The translations under genes and the position numbers were made by a program. A stretch of 42,707 nt of DNA, taken from NCBI GenBank assembly GCA_020536535.1, contig JAHLWZ010000933.1:1-42707 (forward strand), written 5' to 3'. Origin of the DNA: Pelomyxa schiedti. Taxonomy: Eukaryota; Protista; Evosea. Shown here in pieces: positions 3,256 through 41,535 of this stretch. The notes beneath the pieces are model-generated. The model was not told the origin of the DNA. It ran no database searches and saw only the letters and a program-made list of their open reading frames with translations. Every line of letters starts with the position of its first letter. Position 1 is the first letter of the stretch.

Positions 3256-6200
3256 TTAATGAGTTCTAACGGTGTTGTGTAAAGATACACACTTGGATTT
3301 GATATCCTCACTGTTTGCTGTACCGAGGGATGCATTGGAGCCGGTCAAGTTCTTGGGTGGTGGTGTGATTACAGGTGAGGGTGTGTGGGTGTAAACAAGT
3401 GGTGATGATTCTGCAATTCCCTTGGGAGGCCGAATCGCAAACGAGAGTGCTGATGGTTTGTTGTGGTTTGTGTTGTTGGAGTCTGCTTTGGTAATGGGAG
3501 TTGTGGTTTTGTGTGTGGTTGCAGAAGGAATGCTTGGGGTTGTGGATTTTGATGGATCCAATGATCCCGGTGATGATGAATTGGTGGTGTTTGGAGGTGA
3601 TGAATATACTGTTGTTGTGGTTGTTGTGGTTGTGGTGGGTGATTGGTAATGTGGATCAGGTGAGGGTGAGGAGTGTCTTGATGAAAAGTAGTCAGGGGAT
3701 GGACTTCTCAGTGCTGAGGAGGATGGGACAGAACTGGGAACCGGATTATCAAACATTGAGAAGTTCGGCGATACAGCAATGGAAGCAGCATGGTTGCGGT
3801 GGTCACGTTCGGTGCTAGGATTCTCATTGACACCGTTACCAACACACCCGGTACTCGCTCCGGTGTTCGCGGGATTTGTCACTGTGCTTCCCACAGTTGG
3901 TACTTGTGTAGAACTCGCATTTTCAATGGGCGAGGGACTGGCTGAGAAAGTAGTATTCCCGGGGCTTTTTTCGTGGGGAGGGATCGCTTTTGGTACCTTC
4001 AGCAGGAAAAAGTCCGGCTCTTTCCCAGAAAATATTGGTGACAGAAGAGTAGCTAGTTCAGTCCAAATACCTGTTCATTTGTTAGCGTTTCCTGTGTGGT
4101 AGTGCCTCCAAAAACCTGGATTAACTTCCTTGGAAGGAGGCTTCACTTTTAAATATGCCTTCTGGATTTTTTTCAGGTATTTCACATAGATCTTCCGTTG
4201 CTTTATCTCTTGCTCAATTTGTTGCCTCTTCAGAACGATATTGGAGTTGAGCACAGAGTTCTGGGTGTTGATGGCTTCGATTTGGCATTGCATATCTCTA
4301 TGAGTGTTGCACAGTGCTGGACAAGAAGTAAGTGAACTGAAATATATGGAACTAACGAACATGTTACGTCATTTTGATTTTGAGTAATTTCAGTTTCTCT
4401 AGCCGTTCTTTGATCCTGTAATAGACAATACTGCTTTTGTGCTCTCGCCAGTTTCCTGTCCAAAGTCTGAAAATAATGAGAAGAAAGAGATAAGAAAGCT
4501 GCTCAGACCCTAGAGTAACTATCAATACTGCCACATATTGCTTTCTTTGCGTCATCAACACAATACTCCGAAACGTCTGGTGTGTAAATGGCTTGCTGTG
4601 TAATTATGAAGACACTCTCTCCATTGATTTTCTTCAATTGATCAACAATACTCTAGTTTGTTGTAAAGAAAAATCTTCGAAAAAAGACAGCTCACTGGCC
4701 CACTTATTGGGTAGTGTTGGAGAATCCAATCACGAATTTCTGACATGCTCGCCTTAATTCTTGAATGTAGTCCAAGTAAACATTCTGTTACATCTGTAGG
4801 CTCGATGGGTTTGTCAAGATATTCCAAGTAGCCATCTTCTTCAATGCTCACATCCTGATGTGGAGCTCTTGTGAGATACGTCCTGAAGGCTTGGGGAAGC
4901 TTACAATTAAACTTCTGAAGAAGGCATTTACATCCCCCAGCTTTGATTGAATGTAGAGCCATAGTGCGCGAGAGTATGTATCAACACTACCTAAAGTGCC
5001 AATGCCACTTCCAGATGCCATACATTGAAATGCCTTGGTGACGATAAAAAGGATACGTTGAACTTCACTGGAAGGCGCAGCTTTTGAACAACGGTCATAG
5101 GAATGTAATGATTGTACAGAAGAGTACATGAGGCAAGCCCATAAGTGTGAGGGGCAACTAAAGCAGGTGCAATGAACCGGAGGAAAAAAAAACCTCCAAC
5201 AGTGACTGTCATGGAGATGTCAGGCCATTTGGTCTTTATTTCCATGTCAGCATATTTCAAAACTTTTCGTAGATTTCTGTGCCACATTAGTGTAAGTTGA
5301 ACAGGCATTACTACTCACAATGGGCACTCATCAATAGAATTTAAAAGATGCACAACAAGTTGTTGCATTAACTCTTGCAATTCTTTGCAGTTTTGTGCTG
5401 CCATTTCAGGACTCCCAGATTTTACGGGGTCAGGCTTTTATAGTTCCCAGTTAAAATGAGACTGTTGTTAAAGGTGTACCTTTACTGACCTCTAAATTTT
5501 TGAACCTCTCATATATTGTAGCGACAGTTGGTTGGAGGAGGCTAACCAGGTATTTATGTGCTTCTAAGTGATAAAAAGCAGATAGAACACGTGAAGCTGC
5601 ATTCAATCCCCTGAAAAGTGTCCCAGAGTCATCTAGACAAATCACTGAGAATATAAATGGGGATGATTGATGACAGACAAGTGAGAGAGACTTGCATGCG
5701 GATAGCATGTTGCAACAATCTTTGCAGTTGATGGAAACTTGAAAAAAACTTGAGTAGGTCAGAAGGGACACTGTAGAAAAAGTGGGTAGTAACCTTTAAT
5801 AAAAGAGTTCCTGTAATAGAATAGTCCACCATTTTCTCTTTGGCAATTACACAGTGACACAGGGCGGACACTACCTCCAATTTGGGAGCCAGTAGCAGCT
5901 AAAATTATATTAGCATATTCAAAAGAAGAAGGAAAATTGGCCAAAACTTGCCTCACTCAAATTTGGATTTCTTGCGTTACGCGGGGTTGGCTTGGGTGAT
6001 GGCGATGGCGATTGAGATGATGGTCTGGGTGTTTGCCGTGGTGGTGAGTGGCTTCCTCTCGAGGATGTAAGCTGTCGCAGTGGGAGACTTAGGGTTACAG
6101 GAGAATGTGAAACAGTGCTGGGTGTGTTGGCCACAGAAGTGTGGGATGGGGATGTGGTGATTGTTGTCAAAGGTGGAGGAATGAACATGGTGATGGGGAC

Positions 6201-30778: not shown

Positions 30779-33700
30779 TCAAAAGAGAGCAAAAGGTTGC
30801 CCCACACTCTTTGAGACCCAAGGTGATTGCTCTCCGCTCGAAAGTGTCTGAACCATCACAATGATGCTGTCAACAAGGTCGTTGAAGGGAGTGCCCGGCT
30901 TGGTCTGCTCCACCACTGTTTTTATTTGAGTCGTGGTTGGTTTGGTTGCTCTGAGTGTGAGTGGGGTGGATTTTGATATATTATCAACATTGGACTGACA
31001 GACCTTCCATGAGGCATCCAGTGAAGAACCCATGGTTTCTCCTGTTTGGCAATTTGCATTCGTCTCCGGTCAACTTTCCTTTTTGTGTTTTGTTTTGTTA
31101 TTTGTCTTTTGGTTGTTTTTATTTATTTGACTTGGTTTGTTTGGTTGGGGGAGGAACCAGGGCTTGTTGGATATAAAACAAAGCATCCATGTGGGAAATC
31201 TTCCTTTGCCAAGTCAACCTTTTTCTTTGTTCCAAAACCGCGTGTCTTGGCCAGGAGGACAAGAAAATATGATGAGTGAACATAAGGGTCAAAAAAGAGA
31301 AGAGCGATGGAAATGGCACACACATACCCTCTCTTCATCCCTGTCATCTGATTCACGGCAAGCATCCAAGATGCCAATCACGAGGTTGGAGTGTTTCTTC
31401 AGGCCATCCAAAATGTCACCAAGCATGGGTGCTCTGAACTTCACAATGTCAAAGTTTTTGTCTGTGAACGCTATTTCATCCCCGGTCATCATCAAGAAGT
31501 TGTGCCCCTTCATTTGCCTCCCATGACCGGCAAAGAAAAACAGACTTGCAACCTTTTAAATGTATGAATATTGAGTAGGAAAAAGTGTGACAGCACTTAC
31601 ATTGTTTCCTGCTTTCTTGCACTCTTTCAGAGTTGTCTTGAACTTTTCAATGTGAGACGAGAAGTCTTGAAGCGATGGGACATCACTGAGATGTGTCACT
31701 TGAAACTTGCACACTCTCTCAAGAAACTATCATTGTGCGTAGAGTGTGCACTGTTCGTCAGTGAAATTCAGAAGAGAGAGGGATCAAAGCAAAAAACCTG
31801 TGAAAACTGGGCAGCATCATGGAGTGTGTTCTGCAGTGGCAACTGACAATAAGCTCCGTTTCCAACAACAAACGCAAAACACTTGAAATTCAAGTCAACC
31901 AGGCTCCTCATGACCCTTTCTGCAGGTTGAATTTGTTGCTGTTGTTGAAGTGATGTTGAATGCGTTGGTGGTTTGTTGTTGTTGTTATCAGAGAGGAGGG
32001 CTTTAATCTCTTCGATGATAAACTCTGCATCCCCAACAACAATGCCAAGAGCACACAGCTGCCCAACTGTGTAATTAGCAAGGGTTCTCCCCCGCAGTTT
32101 GTTGAGCCTGAGGATGTCGAGGCACGGTTCTTCAACGCCTTTGGATGCCAGCCACTCGCACACTTGTGTCACACTGGCTGTGTGAATCTCGAAAGGAGAT
32201 CCAAGTCTGTTCCCAACAGAGGGTGTGGTGGATGGCGGCGCCGCTGCGGAAGGAACCGGTGGTGTGGGTTCAGAAGGGGCAACTGACAGCTCACTTCTTG
32301 TGGACGGAAGTGGCGGGTCCCCACTTGTTGCTGTTGGTGTCGGCTGTGTTGAAACAGCGCAAGTTGAGTGTATTTCTGTTTGCTGCTGATTGGAAGGAAT
32401 ACCGCTCAGTGCGGAAGAATGTGCCTCGGTAATTGCAGAAATAACTGCCGCCTTCGTGGTATCTTTTTGAAAAGTTGAGTGTGACAAAATGAGTTGGAAG
32501 GGATTGTTTATCACCATTTGTCGCTGGATGATCATCCCTGAGAATATCCAGGGGCCGAGGCGGTGGTGCCTTTGGTTTTGGAACGCAGCTTATTTTGGTT
32601 TCTTGTGGGGGTGCCATCGCTGATGACGCAGGACTTGGATTTTGTTTTGTATCGTTCCACTCCTCCTTGGAGACCAAAACACCATCCTCATACTGAACTA
32701 CGAATTGTTGTCCAGTGAGGGGAGCGACCATGAAACCTCCCCCATGAAGAACAGGGAAGAAGGAACTCACTTTTATCTTGACGACCTTCCACGTGCACGC
32801 TGTGATTGACTCGACTGTAGCAGCGGAGATGAGGTCTTTCGGTGTGGGGGTCTCGCTTGAAGGGTTCGCCGACACAGGGGATACATGATATTGAGTTAAC
32901 CCCGCAGCTGGGTGGTTGGCGATATCAGGTTCATCGTTGACCCAAAAACACTTGAGAATTCGACTGCCATCAGCCCAAGTGTATGTCATCTCTCCCTCTC
33001 TGTGGTCATGCAGGAAATTTCCTGTCATGGTGAATGCAGTGACACCCTCAGAAGGAGGGTATGAAAACACTACGGGACCCTCCAATGAATCGTTTGTCCA
33101 TTCCCCAGAACACACAAGACCATCTAGCCATTTCTCTGTACCCTTTCCCTCCTTGTAGTCGTCCTTCCAGTAACCAGACCACACAGTCCCATTGGACGCA
33201 TCTGTAAAGACACCGAATCCATTCCTATTGCCATCGCTCAACTCCCCATCATACATAGACCCATCATTGTACCGATACACACCTCTTCCCTCCATCCGAC
33301 CCTCCTTCCACTCCCCAGCATAGCCTCCCTTGCCAGAGGAGAAAACCCCCTTTCCATGCATCAGCCCATCCTTGAAATCTCCCTCATACTTCATGCCGTT
33401 ATACTTCAGTGCGCCCCTTCCGTTCCGCTCGTCGTCGGCCCACTCCCCGGAGTAGCGGGTGCCGTCCTTTTCGGTGCTGGTGCCAAACCCGTGCTTCATC
33501 CCTTTCCTCCACTGCCCGGAGTAGCAGCTCCCATCCGGGCAATGCGACATCCTTCCGTCGCCGTCCCGCTCGTCGTCGCACCACTCCCCCTCGTAGACGG
33601 ACCCGTCGGGGAACTTGTACTTCCCTTGGCCGTGCCTCTTGCCGGACCTCCATTGGCCCGTGTACACGCCAGAGTGCGAGTACTTCAATGTGCCGGTGCC

Positions 33701-33844
33701 GTGCCTTTGTCCGTCCACTATGTCGCCGTTGTAGGTTCCTTCCGAGTCTTTGATCTTCCCCTTGGTGATTACTGAACCATCCGGTGTCGTGCGTGGTGCT
33801 TCGCTGCCTGCACCTCGACTGTTTGGCAGCAACTTCCTCAGCAT
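30779..33844 (-). CDS. MORN-repeat - SAM - caspase-fold (peptidase C14) protein
   Basis: About 10 YxGxWxxGxxxGxG repeats; a 52-nt GT-AG intron (32463-32514) joins in frame to a Pro/Thr linker; SAM (QVCEWLASKGV...NKLRGRTL...LCALGI); FVVGNGAY..LQNTLHDA, FFAGHG, ILDACR, YPTSPG, HGFFTGCL and QSPWVS. Confidence 0.85.
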
Positions 33845-33903
33845 CGTTTCGTTTTTTGATGATGATCGTCGAAAAGGTTAAAAAAAAATCTGTGGGATTC
33901 TCA

Positions 33904-35445
33904 TCAGTCCTTCCTTATCCTCTTTTCAAGGAAAAGGCGCTGGTGGTGCTGAGTGCAAGGTGCCCTCTTGGCACCTGCTTCGGTTGTTTGTTCATTTCCT
34001 TGTTGTGGTTGTGGTTGTGGTTGTGAAGTGGGATATGGTTGTTGGGGCTCCTCCCTGAACTTGGTCTCTTTGAATGCAAGAAACGTGGCTCCACAGCTGG
34101 GATCAACAAATGAGAACTCTTTCTCATCCACGTCACTGTGATAGATGAGCCCACAGCAATCTCCCCAATGCCCGGCAGTTGCACTCAGGGTGAACTCTGG
34201 TTCAGGGGGGTGGCCAGATTGATACTGGGAAAGGAGGCTGTTGACGTCGTACACGTCCACTGATCGTGTGGCAGCACACGTATGTGATCGCTCTGCCGAA
34301 CAGGCATAGAAGTGGCTGTTGTCAATCCTCTCAACCGTGGATATTCCCCCAATGTCTACGTCGCAGTCTTGTCCAGGGAGGGTGTCGGCAGAGTACCTGG
34401 CCCTCCACACTGTGTCGTTCTCCCTCAGCTTTCCAATTGTCACTCTGCGGCCTTCGTTGGTCCACAACTTACAATCCTGGGGTGCCCGGAAGAAATCGGC
34501 ACCGGCGTCTGGAATGAAGCGAACCTTGACGAGAGTCTCGGCTTTGTAAGACCCTTCGAGGTCAACAACTGTGACACCACCTTTGCCCCTGACGAGCAAC
34601 TCGTCAGAGTGGCAACGGAAGTCAATCGCAGGAATTTCCGATTCGTGCTTGATAGTCACATACGGTATGCACGGGAAATAGGGCGCACCAGGTGGAATTT
34701 GGTCCTTTACAAGCTCCAGGATTTCTCGCTCCTTCCGTCGCTCTGCTGCTGGATTGGGTGGGCACTGCCAACCCTCTTCATCACCCTCATCGCAGCTGCG
34801 GCTATTGCTGTCACTTTGACTGCCCTGGCTTGTCAGGAACTCGTCAGGAATCCTCCATACCTTGATAGAGGTCTCTGACTTCCACAGCACTGCCCACTTG
34901 GGAGGCCAGCTCCACCTTGGCGGATCGTGCCTCATTTTTGATTTCTCCAGCATGGCCACTGCCCGATTCCTCACCATGTCCTCGATGATGTAGTACTTGT
35001 AATTGAACCTCACAGCGGCATACGTGCTGCTCAGGAAGCACTCCACCTCTCTAACACCGCCTTCAGCGCCAACTTCGCCAACGAACCTCATCCTCAGCGG
35101 GGCCGTGAGTGCAAGGGTGGCAGGTGACACTTCAAACCAGGCAACGTATTTTCTGCCGGGGTCATACTTCACACGCCTTCTTTTCGGTTTTTTTCCACCT
35201 CCACGGCCGGCGGTTGTGATTGTTGTTGTGTCTATTTCTATGTCGGGCTTCGCCCTTCCGATGCGCCACACAAGTAGGTTACGCGTGGCTGCTTTGAGCA
35301 GGTACTCCTTGACTATTAGCCGGATCAGTGGAGGTGTCAGAAATGATGCGTAGCTTGATGCTCCACACCTGACCACCATGCAACAACACAGTGACATGGC
35401 CTGCTGCCTGCCGTCAATCCACCTCGTCATGCTCATTCGGTACAT
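33904..35445 (-). CDS. Single-exon hypothetical protein of a probable lineage-specific family
   Basis: 513-aa ORF. N-terminal RQQAMSLCCCMVVRCGASSYASFLTPPLIRLI resembles a motif I associate with expanded Pelomyxa hypothetical proteins; beta-rich body. Confidence 0.7.
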   Translation of the reverse strand: MYRMSMTRWIDGRQQAMSLCCCMVVRCGASSYASFLTPPLIRLIVKEYLLKAATRNLLVWRIGRAKPDIEIDTTTITTAGRGGGKKPKRRRVKYDPGRKYVAWFEVSPATLALTAPLRMRFVGEVGAEGGVREVECFLSSTYAAVRFNYKYYIIEDMVRNRAVAMLEKSKMRHDPPRWSWPPKWAVLWKSETSIKVWRIPDEFLTSQGSQSDSNSRSCDEGDEEGWQCPPNPAAERRKEREILELVKDQIPPGAPYFPCIPYVTIKHESEIPAIDFRCHSDELLVRGKGGVTVVDLEGSYKAETLVKVRFIPDAGADFFRAPQDCKLWTNEGRRVTIGKLRENDTVWRARYSADTLPGQDCDVDIGGISTVERIDNSHFYACSAERSHTCAATRSVDVYDVNSLLSQYQSGHPPEPEFTLSATAGHWGDCCGLIYHSDVDEKEFSFVDPSCGATFLAFKETKFREEPQQPYPTSQPQPQPQQGNEQTTEAGAKRAPCTQHHQRLFLEKRIRKD

Positions 35446-35552
35446 CTCGCCTTTAGATAAAGATCAAACAAACTCTCACGTTTGAGCGAAAGGTCGTTTT
35501 TCGCAATCACTTGGCGGTTGCTGTAGCTTATTTAAACGTCGCCTTGGCCAAG

Positions 35553-36900
35553 ATGGTGAAGGTGTGCCGCGTTGGGTTTGTGTCCAACTCTTCGTCGGTG
35601 TCGTACTACGTGCTGTGGACTGACAAGCCAGTTGACGAAGTGCGTCAAGCGACGCTGTCGTGCGCCGACGCCTCACAGCTCGCCGACGAAGTTGCTGGCC
35701 TGGATCCCGAGTGCCTCACAGTTGTGTAAGATGCCTTCTGAGGGACAACAACAAAAACAAGCAGCCAACTTACAATTAATGTTGACTTGGTATTCACAGG
35801 TCGCGGTATGCTGCCTCCACCACCGCACTTCGTTGCCACCGTCGTGGTATCAGGAAGATATAGTGTCACCTGGTACGCAAAGTGCCTCTTATCCTCCACG
35901 CCCCTCACCCTCACCATATCCACCAGCTCCTCCACCTTCATATTCACCCTCATCCTCTGCATTACCGCCTCCACCATTGCCACCACCTACCCCACTTCCA
36001 CTTTCACCACAATATCAGCCCTTGTCATCTGAATCATCATTTCCACCCACACTATACCAATATTCACCTTCACCCTCTTCATTCCCACCTCCTCCATCCC
36101 AGTATCCTCCTGGGTTTTCTCAATTTCCTCCTGTCCCGTCCCAATATCCACAATACTCATCTTCATCTCCACCATACCCATATCCACCGTACCCATATCC
36201 ATCACCACAACTACCATATCCACCCTGCCCTTATCCACCCTCTCCGTATCCACTGTACCCATATGCATATCCACCATCCCCATATCCACCGTCCCCTTAT
36301 CCGCCTCCTTCCTTCCCTGGAAACTTTGAGTGCGAGATTTTTGTATGCCACGATTGTATGTTGTCAGTGCAGTCTTGGATGGACAAAATAGCAGGCTGGG
36401 TGCGGCGAAGAACTCTCGCTATTTCTAAAACCACTCCTGAAAAAAAGGCATCCCTCTCACTCAAATCAGGATAACACGTGCTTAGAACTGTCAAGCTACA
36501 AACAAGGATGCATCCACCAGTGGTGATTCAAATTTACCAAAACCACTTGATAAGGTGTCTCTTACACAAATTTTCAAATGGGTTGTCTTCCGGGAGCCCG
36601 GGCCACCCAAGTCACTTGTAGCACTCTGTCGAGCAACCAAAGCGATACTAAGATTGAGTCTAGTGTGCCGGAGGTGTGCACTTTCTTTACAGAACAACGA
36701 ATCACTTTTAAACAACAACAACAAAAGCTGGAGGGAAGCAGCTCTTGATGACCAAGTTTGGATTGATATTGTGAGGAACAGCCCCGCCAAGAATTTCATG
36801 CCTGGATGGTGAGTGACATGTATCTTTCTTAATTTATCTCACAAATGAAACAAAACAAGGTGGACTGATCCAACTGTGGGTTGCAAACCACACCTTGATC
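35553..36900 (+). CDS. Hypothetical protein(s): N-terminal GFVSNSSS motif, Pro/Tyr-rich tract and F-box-like segment; exon connectivity uncertain
   Basis: MVKVCRVGFVSNSSSVSYYVLW; PPYPYPP repeats at 35880-36315; LTQIFKWV...LRLSLVCRR|WREAALDDQVW (F-box-like) at 36555-36790. Confidence 0.45.
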
Positions 36901-36980
36901 GTGTGGAGACCTGTAGAGAACTCACGATGAGGGTGTGGAAGATTTCCTAAGCGTTGGAGGCACAACCAATACCCAGGCTC

Positions 36981-37197
36981 GCACCAAACTTCTGGAGATT
37001 GATGCACAGGAGGCCAATGTCCACCCAGAAGCATGTCATACAACACCTTGCAACATGCAGAACCGGCACAGTTGCTTACGCAAGCCTCAGCCCTCTGTAT
37101 GGCAATTTAGGTGGCACAGCACTCTCAAACGTGCTCAGCAGCCCAGCAACAAAGACCTTTAGTTAAAAAACACAAAACCGACCAAGTTGGTTCGATT
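36981..37197 (+). repeat. Diverged direct repeat, copy 1 (partner at 42081-42196)
   Basis: GCACCAAACTTCTGGAGATTGATGCACAGGAGGCC...AGGTGGCACAGCACTCTCAAACGTGCTCAGCAGC...ACCAAGTTGG matches the copy at 42081. Confidence 0.8.
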
Positions 37198-37391
37198 ACT
37201 TGGGAGGGTTGTTCTTCAGTGGTGGATGGAAAATCTGCTCTTTTTGATTTATCTGGCCCAGAAAATGTGCTTGTCCTGCAGCAGTCCCTGTGCATGGAAG
37301 GGAGAAAGGATTTTTGTTTGTGAGATTCTCTTTCAGTGAAATAAAAACACAGGACAAACTTGTGCTTGTATGTTTCTGCGATGGTGGTGCC

Positions 37392-40300
37392 TCAGAAGAG
37401 AGAAAAGCGAAGTCCTGAACTCTTTGAGACCCATGGCGTCTGTTCATCATGAGATTCCGTCTGCACAGTCTGGATGATGGCCGACTCGATATCGTTCCAC
37501 GATGTTCCGGGTTCTGCCTTCTCAACAACTGGGGCATGTGTGATGTCAGAAAGTGGTTAAGGGGTGGGGGGGTGGAAATGGAGGCAAAGCAACCTTCGAG
37601 GAAGCAACCAGTGAAGAATCCATGGTTCTGCCTGTTTGGGAGAGTGCAAACATCCAGTGTTGTCCTCCCTGTGTGTTACATGCAGATGCGAAGAAGAAGC
37701 GAGGCAGGGTGATTCAGGTGAAAACCCAGAGGGAAAAAAAAAGAAACCTGGGCTTGTCGGATAAATCAAAACGCACCCAGCTCGGAAATCTTCTTTCGTC
37801 AATTGGAGCTGGGTGGTGGCGTCTGACCCGCGTGTCTGCCAATTTCAGAAGATCAGTGTGGCTGATTATAAATGAAAGAACGTGGCTTATCGCGTCACCT
37901 TGAAGGCACTCTTCTCACTGGATTGGCGGCAAGCATCAAGAATGCCGATTGTCAGATCGGAGTATCTCTTCATTACATCAATCACAGCGCCAAGCATCGG
38001 TGCTTTGACCTCCATGATGTCATAACTGGTCTCCGTGAAAGCACTCGCGTCTTCTGTCATCAGCAGGAAGTTGTGTCCGTCCACCTGCCTTCCGTGTCCG
38101 GCAAAATAAAAGATGCTCGCAACCTGATGATGTCTGTCATTCTCAAAATTCGACACAACAAGAGAAAGAGAGACCACCAAACCTTGTTTCCTGCCCTCTT
38201 TTCCTTGATCAGTGCTTCTTTGAATTTTCGCAAGTTGCTATTAAACACGTCGAGATTTGGGATATTCTTGTAGCAGGCCACTTCAAATTGACATTTGTTC
38301 TTCAGGAACTGCATTGTCATCAATTTAAAAACAAAGTTTGTTTGGGAAATGGAAGAGACCTCACAAATAGAGTCTGCATCATTGATGGCGTTTTTGAGTG
38401 AACGGGGCTCCCCATAAGATTGATTTCCAACAACAAATGCAAAGCACTTGTACCTCATATCAACACCGAAAAGAGGTACAAGTGCTCCCACTGAAAAAAA
38501 AATTGTGAGAAAAAGCATAGAGAGGGCGGAGGATCTTGTCTCTGCCAGTTGCCAACCTGTCGTCGACTTGAGGGAACTGTGGGACGATTGCTCGTGACCT
38601 CTTGCCAAATGCATTTTGACTTCCTCGACAATGAATTCTGCATCACCAAAAACGAGGCCAAGGTCACACAATTTCTGCACGGAGCAATTGACAAGTCTTC
38701 TTCCTCTCACTTTATTCGCTCTGATGATTTTCAGGCAGTCGTCATCCACACCAACAGATTCAAGCCACCGACACGTTTGGTCTGTGTTGGCTGTTTGAAT
38801 TTGAAAGGGTGTCGCTGTTTCAGCACTCGTGAGTGTTCCAGGTATTTGTGCGGGAATGTCTAGTTTACATGCTGTTGATGGTGAGTCAAATGTGAGTGAT
38901 AAATTTGGAGAATTCAAAGATGTGCTGGCTGTTTGTGTGTTCAGTACAGGTGCCAAATCCATTGAGGAGTTTGGCAACGGCAACGGTTGTTGGTTGTATT
39001 GAGGAATTAGAATGGTTTCAGGCTTTGATGCAATTGTTGGAGGCTTGCTTGGGAGTGACAGTATCAAAGGAGATGTGGGGGCTGCAGGTGGTGTGTTTGT
39101 TGTAGGAGTTGGAATTTCTGAGGGACTTGTCTTTAATTGGTTATGAAGTGAATGAATGAAGTTATTCTCAAAGTATTCTTTGCCTGTGGCAAGAGCCATG
39201 GCATTCGGGTGTGACCCTTTTTGAGAGGGATGGAGGGAAGATTCAGTAGATGGTGGAATATGGATATATCAAACTGAGAGGGCGATTCTGTGAATCAAGA
39301 ATCTCAATGGGAATTTCAAAAAGGGCATCAGGGAGAGTGTTTTCAGGGCCTCCTGAGACAAGCCAAATGTGTGCGTTCAGGGGGTATTTTGGGCCACCAA
39401 CAGTGGAGCATGAAAATGCAGATGTTTGAGGTGGTTGCAGAAAGATCAGAAGAGAAGCACCCAAAGTAGGATGGATCACCCAAGTAAACCAAAAGAGCTG
39501 TATCTCTATCGATGAAGGGTCACCGCACAATGGAGCAATGGCACATACCTCCGAGACCCAGATACGCGAGTGACTTGTTCGATTCGAGTGCCCTCGCAAT
39601 GTTTGTTGCTCCCTCACTCCCAATTTTGTTGCCTGAGTGATGTTTGATTTGGAGAGTCAACCACCATCCGAGAGTTGAGAGAGAACAATGGAACGATGGT
39701 AACACACATGATATATTCAGAGACACAAGTGACTTGTTCGATTCGAGTGCCCTCGCAATGCTTGTTGCTCCCTCAATCCCGATTGTGTTGTCTGAGTGAT
39801 GTTTGATTTGGAGAGAACGGAATGATGGGAACACACCTGATATATTCAGAGACACGAGTGACTTGTTCGATTCGAGTGCCCTCACAATGCTTGTTGCTCC
39901 CTCACTCCCAATTGTGTTGCCTGAGTGATGTTTGATTTGGAGAGTCAACCACGATACGAGAATTGAGAGAGAGAACAACGGAATGATGGTAACACACATG
40001 ATATATTCAGAGACACGAGTGACTTGTTCGATTCGAGTGCCTTCGCAATGTTTGTTGCTCCCTCACTCCCAATTGTGTTGCCTGAGTGGTGATGTTTGAT
40101 TTGGAGAGAACGGAGTGATGGGAACACACCTGATATATTCAGAGACACGAGTGACTGGTTCGATTCGAGGGCCCTCGCAATGCTTGTTGCTCCCTCACTT
40201 CCAATTTCGTTGTCTGAGTGATGTTTGATTTGGAGAGTCAACCATGATACGAGAATTGAGAGAGAGCACAATGGAACGATGGTAACACACATGATATATT

Positions 40301-41535
40301 CAGAGACACGAGTGACTTGTTCGATTCGAGTGCCCTCGCAATGTTCGTTGCTCCCTCACTCCCAATTGTGTTGCCTGAGTGGTGATGTTTGATTTGGAGA
40401 GTCAACCATGATACGAGAATTGAGAGAGAGCACAACGGAATGATGGGAACACACATGATATCTTCAGATACACGAGTGACTTGGTCGATTCGAGTGCCCT
40501 CGCAATGCTTGTTGCTCCCTCACTTCCAATTGTGTTGTCTGAGTGATGTTTGATTTGGAGAGTCAACCACCATCCGAGAATTGAGAGAGAGCACAATGGA
40601 ACGATGGTAACACACATGATATCTTCAGAGACACGAGTGACTTGTTCGATTCGAGTGCCCTCGCAATGCTTGTTGCTCCCTCGATCCCAATTGTGTTATC
40701 TGAGTGATGATGTTTGATTTGGAGAGTCAACCACCATCCAAGAATTGAGAGAGAGCACAAGGGGAACACACTTGATATATCCAGAGACACGAGTGACTTG
40801 TTCGATTCGAGTGCCCTCGCAATGCTTGTTGCTCCCTCACTCCCAATTTTGTTGCCTGAGTGATGTTTGATTTGGAGAGTCGACCATGATACGAGAATTG
40901 AGAGAGAGCACAATGGAATGATGGTAACACACATGATATATTCAGAGACACGAGTGACTGGTTCGATTCGAGTGCCCTCGCAATGTTTGTTGCTCCCTCA
41001 ATCCCAATTTTGTTGTCTGAGTGATTATGTTTGATTTGGAGAGGCAACCACCATCCGAGAATTGAGAGAGAGCACAATGGAACGATGGTAACACACATGA
41101 TATCTTCAGAGACACGAGTGACTTGTTCGATTCGAGTGCCCTCGCAATGTTTGTTGCTCCCTCACTCCCAATTTTGTTGTCTGAGTGATTATGTTTGATT
41201 TGGAGAGGCAACCACCATCCGAGAATTGAGAGAGAGCACAAGGGGAACACACCTGATATATTCAGAGACACGAGTGACTGGTTCGATTCGAGTGCTCTCG
41301 CAATGTTTGTTGCTCCCTCACTTCCAATTTTGAGGTAGAGCTTCAGGTACCTACAAGTACAGTATGGACTCGCAAGTTCCGCACACACCCTCCCAAGTTT
41401 AACTTGGGAATCTTTGGTGATAACTTGGTGACTTTGTAAGAGACTGGTGCCCCGAGAGGATGATTGTTCGGCCCCCTTCGAGTCCGTTGGTGGAAAAAAA
41501 AAGGGGGGACCTAAGTCCTCAGGGTACCATGGCAC
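37392..41535 (-). CDS. LRR (12 RI/NLRC3-like repeats) - SAM - caspase-fold (peptidase C14) protein; 5' end unresolved, possibly extending to about 42018
   Basis: 28-aa LRR exons splice in frame through exon GGPENTLPD...RPL into R-SHPNAMALATGK, then a Pro/Thr linker, SAM (QTCRWLESVGV...NKVRGRRL...LCDLGL), FVVGNQSY, YFAGHG, ILDACR, YPTSPG, HGFFTGCF and QTPWVSKS...SLF*. Confidence 0.8.
39549..41333 (-). repeat. Tandem array of 12 exon+intron units (84-nt LRR exon plus 45-80-nt intron)
   Basis: Anchor GATTCGAG at 39581, 39740, 39869, 40030, 40162, 40323, 40487, 40648, 40804, 40965, 41129 and 41285; periods 129-164 nt; GTGTGT donors and ACTCAG acceptors. Confidence 0.95.

Follow-up and report, generated by a model that had tools for sequence, protein, structure and literature searches.

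How might a protist bring caspase-fold proteases together? These enzymes are usually activated by proximity, and the known devices for this are death-fold filaments and STAND NTPase rings. The question is raised by two genes, which we call A and B, in a stretch of DNA from the anaerobic amoeba Pelomyxa schiedti (GenBank JAHLWZ010000933.1, or contig C933 of the 52 Mb assembly; "the window" is this whole stretch of 42,707 nucleotides). Both genes are on the minus strand, and each encodes a repeat head, a linker rich in proline and threonine, a SAM domain, and a peptidase of the caspase-like family C14 (clan CD). The head consists of MORN repeats in gene A and of 12 leucine-rich repeats (LRRs) in gene B. 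We found that A and B are intact members of a P. schiedti family in which the SAM-C14 cassette is fixed and the heads vary. We propose that these proteins are sensor-clustering proteases, whose most likely use would be in a conflict, immune-like or cell-fate pathway. We see an even chance that this account is right.

An initial annotation of the window had described both genes, and its observations are confirmed: everything that it read from the sequence is where it said, on the one strand. Its interpretation, of a single-chain receptor, oligomeriser and protease, is partly supported.

The structures of genes A and B

The P. schiedti genome has many short GT-AG introns (about 45-80 nt). As stand-ins for the spliced full-length proteins, we used public models: P0010 for gene A, and P0007, from contig C1297, which is the closest paralog of gene B. 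The domains of gene B itself were scored exon by exon. Gene A has these parts:

33844..30779, minus strand: gene A (MORN, linker, SAM, C14 peptidase)
32515..33844, minus strand: exon 1, MORN repeats and then a conserved beta-rich region, with its own ATG at 33844 (Pfam MORN, E = 1e-43)
32463..32514, minus strand: 52-nt GT-AG intron, from the MORN frame into the linker/SAM frame (read from the sequence; P0010 has the same junction, ..PATN/DTTK..)
31798..32462, minus strand: exon 2, Pro/Thr linker, SAM domain and the start of p20 (KCFAFVVGN) (Pfam SAM_2, SAM profile, fold)
30779..31726, minus strand: the protease exons as a block (exon-by-exon match to P0010; MALT1 fold, Z = 21.8)
31726-31601, minus strand: protease exon, 126 nt
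31552-31328, minus strand: protease exon with FFAGHG..ILDACR, 225 nt
31245-31158, minus strand: protease exon with YPTSPG, 88 nt
31078-31004, minus strand: protease exon with HGFFTGC, 75 nt
30915-30779, minus strand: protease exon with QSPWVS and the stop codon (TGA, 30781-30779), 137 nt

The junctions of P0010 are identical to those that we read from the sequence, and the end of exon 1 is fixed both by its donor (G/GTGATA) and by P0010. Six stretches of exon 1 match MORN (PF02493). We also considered an in-frame intron at 32770-32693 (GTGAGT..CAG), and rejected it: P0010 includes this stretch as coding sequence, and the paralog P0005 conserves it.

Gene B has these parts:

41530..37392, minus strand: gene B (myristoylation motif, 12 LRRs, linker, SAM, C14)
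41476..41530, minus strand: start codon ATG (41530-41528) and an immediate 52-nt intron (41527-41476); the same ATG/GT..AG/GGGGCC is found in the paralog on C1297
39549..41475, minus strand: N-terminal and LRR block (regular GT-AG units, all phase 1)
41475-41253, minus strand: N-terminal exon, which includes LRR 1 (unspliced RNA contig over 41300-41429)
41180-41097, 41016-40933, 40855-40772 and 40699-40616, minus strand: 84-nt LRR exons 1 to 4 of 11
40538-40455, 40374-40291, 40213-40130 and 40081-39998, minus strand: 84-nt LRR exons 5 to 8 of 11
39920-39837, 39791-39708 and 39632-39549, minus strand: 84-nt LRR exons 9 to 11 of 11
39275..39505, minus strand: connecting exon, 231 nt, with the hydrophobic stretch LFWFTWVIHPTLGASLLIF (RNA-supported introns on either side)
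38360..39216, minus strand: 857-nt exon, Pro/Thr linker, SAM domain and the start of p20 (YKCFAFVVGN) (open frame)
37392..38308, minus strand: the protease exons as a block (RNA joints; open frames)
38308-38183, minus strand: protease exon, 126 nt
38123-37899, minus strand: protease exon with YFAGHG..ILDACR, 225 nt
37835-37748, minus strand: protease exon with YPTSPG, 88 nt
37668-37594, minus strand: protease exon with HGFFTGC, 75 nt
37528-37392, minus strand: protease exon with QTPWVS and the stop codon, 137 nt

There are exactly 12 LRRs, the number originally claimed. The first is fused to the N-terminal exon and the other 11 are single phase-1 exons, with 11 GT-AG introns (45-80 nt) between the units. 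The 28-residue units (LxxLxLxxNxIGxxGAxxIAxAL) are of the RI/NLR type, and in P0007 the array matches LRR_6 in Pfam (E = 2e-49). Phases are consistent over the 20 exons of gene B, with no internal stop. Within the 857-nt exon, an in-frame 66-nt intron (38556-38491) is probable; P0007 removes the equivalent stretch.

The mature N-terminus of gene B is MGAEQSS, an N-myristoylation-type motif, and P0007 begins with MGAEQSSS. The start codon is the end of its own exon, and this arrangement is kept in the paralog on C1297 (locus L005, about 4050-4105). Two other features of the N-terminal half deserve mention. The LRR exon-plus-intron units (39549-41336) are near-identical to one another, introns included, and the differing residues cluster at the splice-split codon (D/Y/C/N/G), at position 3 (K/T/E) and at position 26 (N/K/D/G). 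And the connecting exon, which has no match in Pfam, has its hydrophobic stretch (Kyte-Doolittle 1.55 over 19 amino acids) conserved in the LRR-type paralogs. This stretch might form a transmembrane helix, dip into the membrane or cap the LRRs; its topology would be odd alongside a myristoylated N-terminus.

The initial annotation had noted introns at matching positions in the protease part. The similarity is stronger than that: the last five exons of A and B are equal in length (126, 225, 88, 75 and 137 nt), with their boundaries at homologous residues. The shared Pro/Thr linker is visible in both genes.

The peptidase domain resembles MALT1

Both genes encode a complete caspase-fold peptidase, as had been claimed. 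P0010 matches Peptidase_C14 (PF00656) across the entire domain (76.2 bits against a cut-off of 21.4, E = 3.9e-21), P0007 also matches this family (71.3 bits, E = 1e-19), and the p20 exon of gene B is above the cut-off by itself (23.9 bits, E = 3.7e-5). Both genes have the motifs AGHG, LDACR, YPTSPG, HGFFTGC and Q(S/T)PWVS. The His-Cys dyad is intact, and AGHG and LDACR align with His415 and Cys464 of MALT1.

We modelled the cassette of gene A with AlphaFold 2 (AF2), which gave a five-helix SAM domain (pLDDT 83-90), a disordered linker and a caspase fold. When this model was compared to the Protein Data Bank (PDB) with Foldseek, the first 30 matches were all MALT1 (E = 1.6e-11, TM score 0.72 on the target), followed by caspases 1, 9, 3 and 8. 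VIA-align gave the same ranking: MALT1 (Z = 21.8, rmsd 2.6 over 208 amino acids), caspase-9 (Z = 19.3) and then metacaspases (Z of about 17; 17.0 for metacaspase 4). Its matches also include c-FLIP. A PDB search with a single protein sequence found MALT1 as the only family, with the His and the Cys aligned (E = 0.03). The initial annotation had compared the DACR motif to paracaspases and to bacterial enzymes, and both comparisons are borne out: MALT1 is the best match in the PDB, and the nearest relatives by sequence are bacterial.

The substrate pocket can be compared as well. In the alignment with MALT1, Asp365 is opposite an Asp that is invariant in the family (N-x-x-x-D-A), and Asp462 is opposite the Asp in LDAC. 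We take Asp365, Asp462 and Glu500 to be the acidic S1 residues of MALT1 (numbering counted from His415 and Cys464), so two of the three have aligned equivalents in the family. These alignments suggest that the family peptidase likely prefers a basic P1 residue (Arg or Lys). Also, the disordered loop between the p20-like and p10-like halves contains a near-invariant R-x-R-G (R-T-R-G), which may be a site of self-cleavage. In the AF2 model, this inter-half loop (residues 253-280) has low confidence.

We also asked whether the proteins belong to a known class. They are not metacaspases: the motif is D-A-C-R-(E/Q)-S and not D-x-C-H-S-G, and metacaspase structures rank below both MALT1 and the caspases. 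They are not type-1 paracaspases in their domain content, as Pfam found no death-fold or immunoglobulin (Ig) family in P0010, P0005, P0007, P0006 or P0009. And they are not NLR or other STAND proteins, as neither the LRR-type models nor the exons of gene B matched an NTPase family in Pfam. This agrees with the initial annotation, which had SAM in the place of NACHT or death domains: Pfam detected neither in the models scanned.

The SAM domain

In gene A, the SAM domain (about 32202-31981) is above the threshold for SAM_2 in Pfam (22.0 bits with a cut-off of 20.5, E = 2e-4). In gene B (about 38821-38600), it is below the threshold (16.5 bits, E = 0.01). A profile of the family's SAM domain matches both genes, at 31981-32202 in gene A (E = 1.6e-34) and in gene B with E = 1.5e-37. 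When compared to the PDB, this profile hits only SAM domains, with liprin-beta1 as the best (E = 9e-9), followed by Shank2, CNK2, DGK-delta and SARM1. The fold agrees, with SAM domains of the polymer-forming type as its matches: residues 13-81 of the cassette match the SAM domain of PHC3 (Z = 11.3, rmsd 1.5 over 69 amino acids), and the other matches in VIA-align are DGK-delta, Scm, L3MBTL3, CNK, SARM1 and tankyrase (Z of 10-11.3, rmsd 1.4-2). So the family has a SAM domain by sequence and by its five-helix fold. A two-copy complex prediction for the SAM domain of gene A scored 0.00 without controls, which is neither for nor against binding.

Are the heads and the peptidase in one gene?

It could be argued that the repeat arrays are not fused to SAM-C14 at all, and that faulty gene models have joined adjacent genes. 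Public models of this genome do merge neighbours: P0008 includes TRAPPC13, and P0010 includes an upstream open reading frame (ORF), as discussed below. We examined contigs from three single-cell RNA runs and one DNA run, which we placed on gene B.

Ten minus-strand GT..AG joints within gene B are seen in RNA contigs. In the protease part, RNA contigs that match the window with 0 mismatches show all five introns, including the one just upstream at 38309-38359, as CT..AC joints. Two LRR introns (41181-41252 and 39792-39836) have RNA joints, and spliced contigs with 0 mismatches cover the N-terminal exon as well as the protease exons. The introns on either side of the connecting exon (39506-39548 and 39217-39274) are supported by an RNA contig that is 95% identical to the window. 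This 304-nt contig runs from 48 nt of the last LRR exon through the connecting exon and into 24 nt of the SAM exon; since it is only 95% identical, it is from a paralog or an allele. Gene B is expressed and spliced. Of the transcript structure that the initial annotation called for, the ten introns are confirmed by RNA contigs, and the join of the LRRs to the SAM exon is seen only in the 95%-identical contig, with its overhang of 24 nt.

The predicted link from the LRRs to SAM-C14 is drawn mainly from frame continuity and from paralogs. The strongest case for a head and a protease in one gene comes from paralogs that lack introns at the critical place. On contig C423, an uninterrupted ORF of 863 amino acids encodes seven Sel1 repeats (E = 2e-54), the linker, SAM and the p20 half, and on contigs C2001 and C100, another head (NX, described below), SAM and p20 are in single ORFs. 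About 25 loci have this order of head, SAM and C14. In gene A, the MORN frame enters the SAM frame by one 52-nt intron with matching phase, and the frame of gene B stays open, in consistent phase, across its exons. The single-chain architecture of repeat head, linker, SAM and peptidase is supported by both gene structures and by single-ORF paralogs. Although the SAM exon of gene B has no RNA contig, and although the bridging contig comes from another copy, we consider it very improbable that the heads and the peptidases are separate genes.

Two observations concern the 3' side of gene B. An RNA contig passes the stop codon and continues through a GT-AG intron (37287-37358) to 36859 and beyond (36800-37390). 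There it overlaps an ORF of the plus strand, which has a weak F-box-like match (36555-36812). Either the 3' untranslated region has an intron, or overlapping transcripts have been merged. And a DNA contig of run X4 (depth 4) skips 215 bases at 37677-37893, with ends that are not those of an intron (AC..CG); a paralog or an allele may explain this, or the assembly may be at fault.

Directly upstream of gene A, on the same strand, is a 513-amino-acid ORF (33904-35445), which P0010 splices together with gene A into a protein of 1359 amino acids. The ORF has no match in Pfam and no close paralog, and no homolog lies upstream of the MORN paralog of gene A. It is probably a separate gene.

A family with one cassette and many heads

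The p20 exon of gene B has 29 matches in the genome. The family SAM profile also has 29 matches, nearly all of which adjoin a p20 match. We estimate that the family has at least 27 members. Chance can be excluded because of the Pfam, PDB and fold statistics and because about 27 paralogs share the cassette. Four SAM matches of the family type lack a match to the p20 exon (C1366:180-404, C630:1720-1929, C141:1689-1898 and C2141:143-289); these may be truncations at contig ends, or SAM domains joined to other effectors.

We typed 25 loci by comparing the sequence upstream of SAM using tblastn and Pfam. These are the heads and the unusual arrangements:

LRR: about 10 loci (Pfam/tblastn typing)
NX, a domain that often starts with MGN..: about 8 loci
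MORN: 2-3 loci
Sel1: 1 locus (C423)
Ank and PARP_reg, then SAM and C14: 1 locus (L013, 5658-7158, plus strand)
Ras/Roc, with an LRR-like part, then SAM and C14: 1 locus (L015, 2872-5369, minus strand)
Dynamin-like, kinase, C14 and C14: 2008 amino acids, annotated as caspase 8 (L024, 2435-7230, minus strand)
C14, canonical SAM (SAM_1, E = 2e-16) and C14 (L020, 4638-7451, plus strand)

The proposal of interchangeable heads on a fixed cassette is upheld by this census, with LRR, NX, MORN, Sel1, Ank-PARP_reg and Ras types. The last two rows are larger family proteins with an additional C14 domain, one of them with dynamin-like and kinase parts. NCBI's names for family paralogs include "NLRC3" and "NOD3", as well as protein kinase and caspase 8.

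About 100 amino acids of the NX head make up a conserved core (..Y.TPT..LP..G..G.PVPRDSV.L.SL.LGWL..FLDI.EAFY..), which is found in P0021, P0002, P0011, P0019, P0026 and P0003 and at locus L003. This core has no match in Pfam. An AF2 model of the NX head had a mean pLDDT of 42 and was unusable, and in a feature search of the Atlas, the nearest clusters were bacterial caspase/TIR clusters at 0.78, which is below the meaningful level.

The cassettes of ten members with different heads are 50-77% identical. Conservation within the cassette is strong in SAM, at the dyad and in the p10-like half. The heads diverge faster: between gene A and its paralog, the MORN regions are 47% identical, versus about 75% for the cassettes. 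In a tree of C14 domains that included bacterial relatives, the Pelomyxa family forms one clade with support of 100, separate from its nearest bacterial relatives. The LRR-headed members form a clade (support 99), and so do the MORN-headed members (support 100). Since the head types form clades, the heads were swapped on a few occasions, after which each type multiplied.

The initial annotation had treated A and B as a pair, and this does not hold up. Their cassettes are about 50% identical and belong to different clades, so we rejected a recent tandem duplication. About 3.5 kb, with unrelated ORFs, separates the two genes. No LRR gene adjoins the MORN paralog on contig C448, and the pairing is not repeated elsewhere. 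Given the different clades and the arrangement on C448, A and B are chance neighbours and not a conserved two-gene unit.

Most copies have the catalytic residues. Among the 11 paralog models P0001-P0011, all but one have both GHG and DACR (P0011 has GHG only). In the NX-SAM-C14 copies on C2001 (L002, 331-2247, plus strand) and C100 (L003, 773-2590, plus strand), GHG is kept and LLDSFFQ replaces LDACR. These two are likely to be pseudo-proteases within the family, judging from their sequences.

The copies without the catalytic Cys would fit another reading, in which the family is mainly non-catalytic scaffolds. C14 would then be a platform for dimerisation or docking, as in the scaffold role of MALT1 or in c-FLIP (which is among the fold matches), with SAM as a signalling hub and with proteolysis secondary or absent. 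However, the His, the Cys and the aligned S1 Asp are kept in A, B and 10 of the 11 models, and conservation extends over the entire p10-like half. So we think that scaffolding as the main function is unlikely.

Distribution and novelty

We compared a profile of the cassette to 1.84 billion representative proteins, which gave 22,242 matches. Among the best 150 of these, no match outside P. schiedti covers SAM. The next-best matches cover the C14 part only and are bacterial or metagenomic caspase-like proteins: a Microcystis cluster, a metagenome-assembled genome of Geobacteraceae, and forms that are fused to TPR, GUN4 or PG_binding domains. A scan of JGI metagenomes found only C14 domains without SAM, at 24-38% identity, and no close relative. 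Searching the Atlas with the SAM-C14 cassette gave only plain C14 clusters (0.89-0.90), which is a lead at most. In current data, the SAM-C14 architecture is restricted to P. schiedti. Independent SAM-C14 fusions of weaker similarity could be hidden below the best 150 matches, and the Archamoebae are poorly sampled.

The literature that we searched contains no description of a fusion of SAM to a caspase, paracaspase or metacaspase, and the Pelomyxa papers that we searched do not mention caspases. So the initial annotation's statement that the architecture was undescribed still stands. The kind of C14 peptidase is known; what is new is the SAM adaptor in cis on a repeat-headed caspase-fold protease. 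Even if the mechanism that we propose fails, this is an undescribed lineage-specific expansion whose members are mislabelled in public databases as NLRC3, NOD3, protein kinase or caspase 8.

Proposed mechanism and role

We infer a mechanism with four steps. First, the head would position the protein, and it may also bind a ligand. Membranes are suggested as the site of placement by the N-myristoylation-type start (MG..) of many family members and by the MORN repeats, which bind membranes. Second, ligand binding or local crowding would let the SAM domains associate head-to-tail. Third, the clustered C14 domains would dimerise, and they may cut themselves at the conserved R-T-R-G loop. Fourth, the active enzyme would cleave substrates after Arg or Lys. 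The output might be used in a conflict, immune-like or cell-fate pathway, possibly to control intracellular prokaryotes; this is the least secure step. P. schiedti is described as harbouring several prokaryotic endosymbionts (PMC10579272). These endosymbionts, the copy number, the swapping of heads, the dead copies and the variation of the LRRs at three positions all fit a conflict or immune-like role, without proving it.

Several points weigh against this proposal. We infer SAM self-association, protease activity, the P1 preference, autoprocessing, ligand binding and the role itself. The AF2 model of the gene A cassette has a mean pLDDT of 68.6, which is moderate, and some family copies (on C2001 and C100) lack the catalytic Cys. 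The 5' end of gene A is ambiguous, in that P0010 runs from the upstream ORF into the MORN exon at about 33807. A single study, which also yielded the genome, is the source of both the RNA and the DNA runs. Among the three single-cell runs, there is no RNA contig for the SAM exon of gene B (38376-39160), and the sole contig that joins the LRR array to the downstream exons is the 95%-identical one that reaches 24 nt into this exon. Finally, the LRR units of gene B are so nearly identical that a broad repertoire of ligands is not evident from gene B alone.

The near-identical LRR units also suit another explanation, which is that these are localised housekeeping proteases. The heads would target a protease that is always active, or always scaffolded, to membranes or complexes (for example, at phagosomes, symbiont vacuoles or the cytoskeleton), and SAM would be a docking or heterotypic adaptor, with no immune or death function. 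The MORN repeats and N-myristoylation-type starts point to membrane targeting, SAM domains also serve as heterotypic adaptors (CNK/HYP is among the fold matches), and no link of the family to infection or death is known. However, about 27 copies, head swapping, catalytically dead members and confinement to one lineage would be expected more of conflict systems than of housekeeping, and the LRRs vary at positions that are expected to face a ligand. We view housekeeping as a serious but rather unlikely explanation.

Our proposal of a sensor-clustering protease can be taken further. Pelomyxa might have innate-immune-like receptors of its own, in which a shared polymerising SAM domain connects swappable heads to an Arg-specific paracaspase-like executioner in the same chain. 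Filaments of SAM would replace NACHT rings and death-fold filaments. Because SAM is so conserved across the paralogs, different sensors could assemble together, and such mixed platforms might perhaps police the resident bacteria and archaea. We offer this stronger version tentatively, as a possibility that is probably not correct in full.

The family suggests a third solution to the problem of proximity: a SAM domain directly before the protease, which is reused with at least six kinds of heads in one free-living protist. If the mechanism is true, then proximity-activated proteolysis could be studied in a compact system that is amenable to experiments, and the "sensor-oligomeriser-effector" grammar of immunity would reach the Amoebozoa, with new parts. 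The family would also provide candidates for how an endosymbiont-filled amoeba controls its endosymbionts.

Comparison with known systems

Among proteins of solved structure, MALT1, a type-1 paracaspase (death domain-Ig-Ig-C14-Ig), is the best match to the family's C14 domain, by sequence and by fold. They share the GHG and D-x-C-R motifs, and two of the three acidic S1 residues align. In both, a domain that self-associates (putatively, for the family's SAM) lies N-terminal to the protease; activation by clustering is known for MALT1 and would be expected for the family under our proposal. However, the family lacks death and Ig domains and has SAM in that place, it has sensor-like repeats in the same chain, and the identity is just 18-22%. 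Furthermore, the family's nearest relatives by sequence are bacterial and not metazoan.

Those relatives are bacterial caspase-like proteins or orthocaspases, which are the nearest proteins from outside Pelomyxa among the best 150 of the 22,242 matches (E of about 1e-40 to 1e-21). In BLAST, proteins such as those from Microcystis aeruginosa are 27-33% identical over the entire C14 domain. They have the same GHG..DACR motifs, and they are often fused to repeats or other domains (TPR, GUN4, PG_binding and FGE-sulfatase forms). But none of those that we examined has SAM, and their C14 domain is usually N-terminal or duplicated. Also, they are prokaryotic and intronless, whereas the Pelomyxa genes are nuclear and intron-rich, have spliceosomal introns that are confirmed by RNA, and form a separate clade.

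In its layout, the family resembles SARM1 (ARM-SAM-SAM-TIR), which also has a repeat head, then SAM, and then a C-terminal effector enzyme in one chain; SAM is the oligomeriser in SARM1 and would be so in the family. The SAM domains of SARM1 are among the sequence and fold matches of the family's SAM. However, the effector of SARM1 is a TIR NADase, its tandem SAM domains form an octameric ring, and it has no homology to the family beyond SAM.

With NLR inflammasomes and apoptosome-type platforms (LRR/WD40-NACHT/NB-ARC-CARD/PYD proteins, which recruit caspases), the family shares RI/NLR-type LRRs (LRR_6) and the output of a caspase-fold protease. It differs in that no STAND NTPase or death-fold adaptor was detected in the models scanned, and in that its P1 preference, as predicted from the aligned S1 residues, is likely to be basic instead of Asp. 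And in the family, the protease is in cis.

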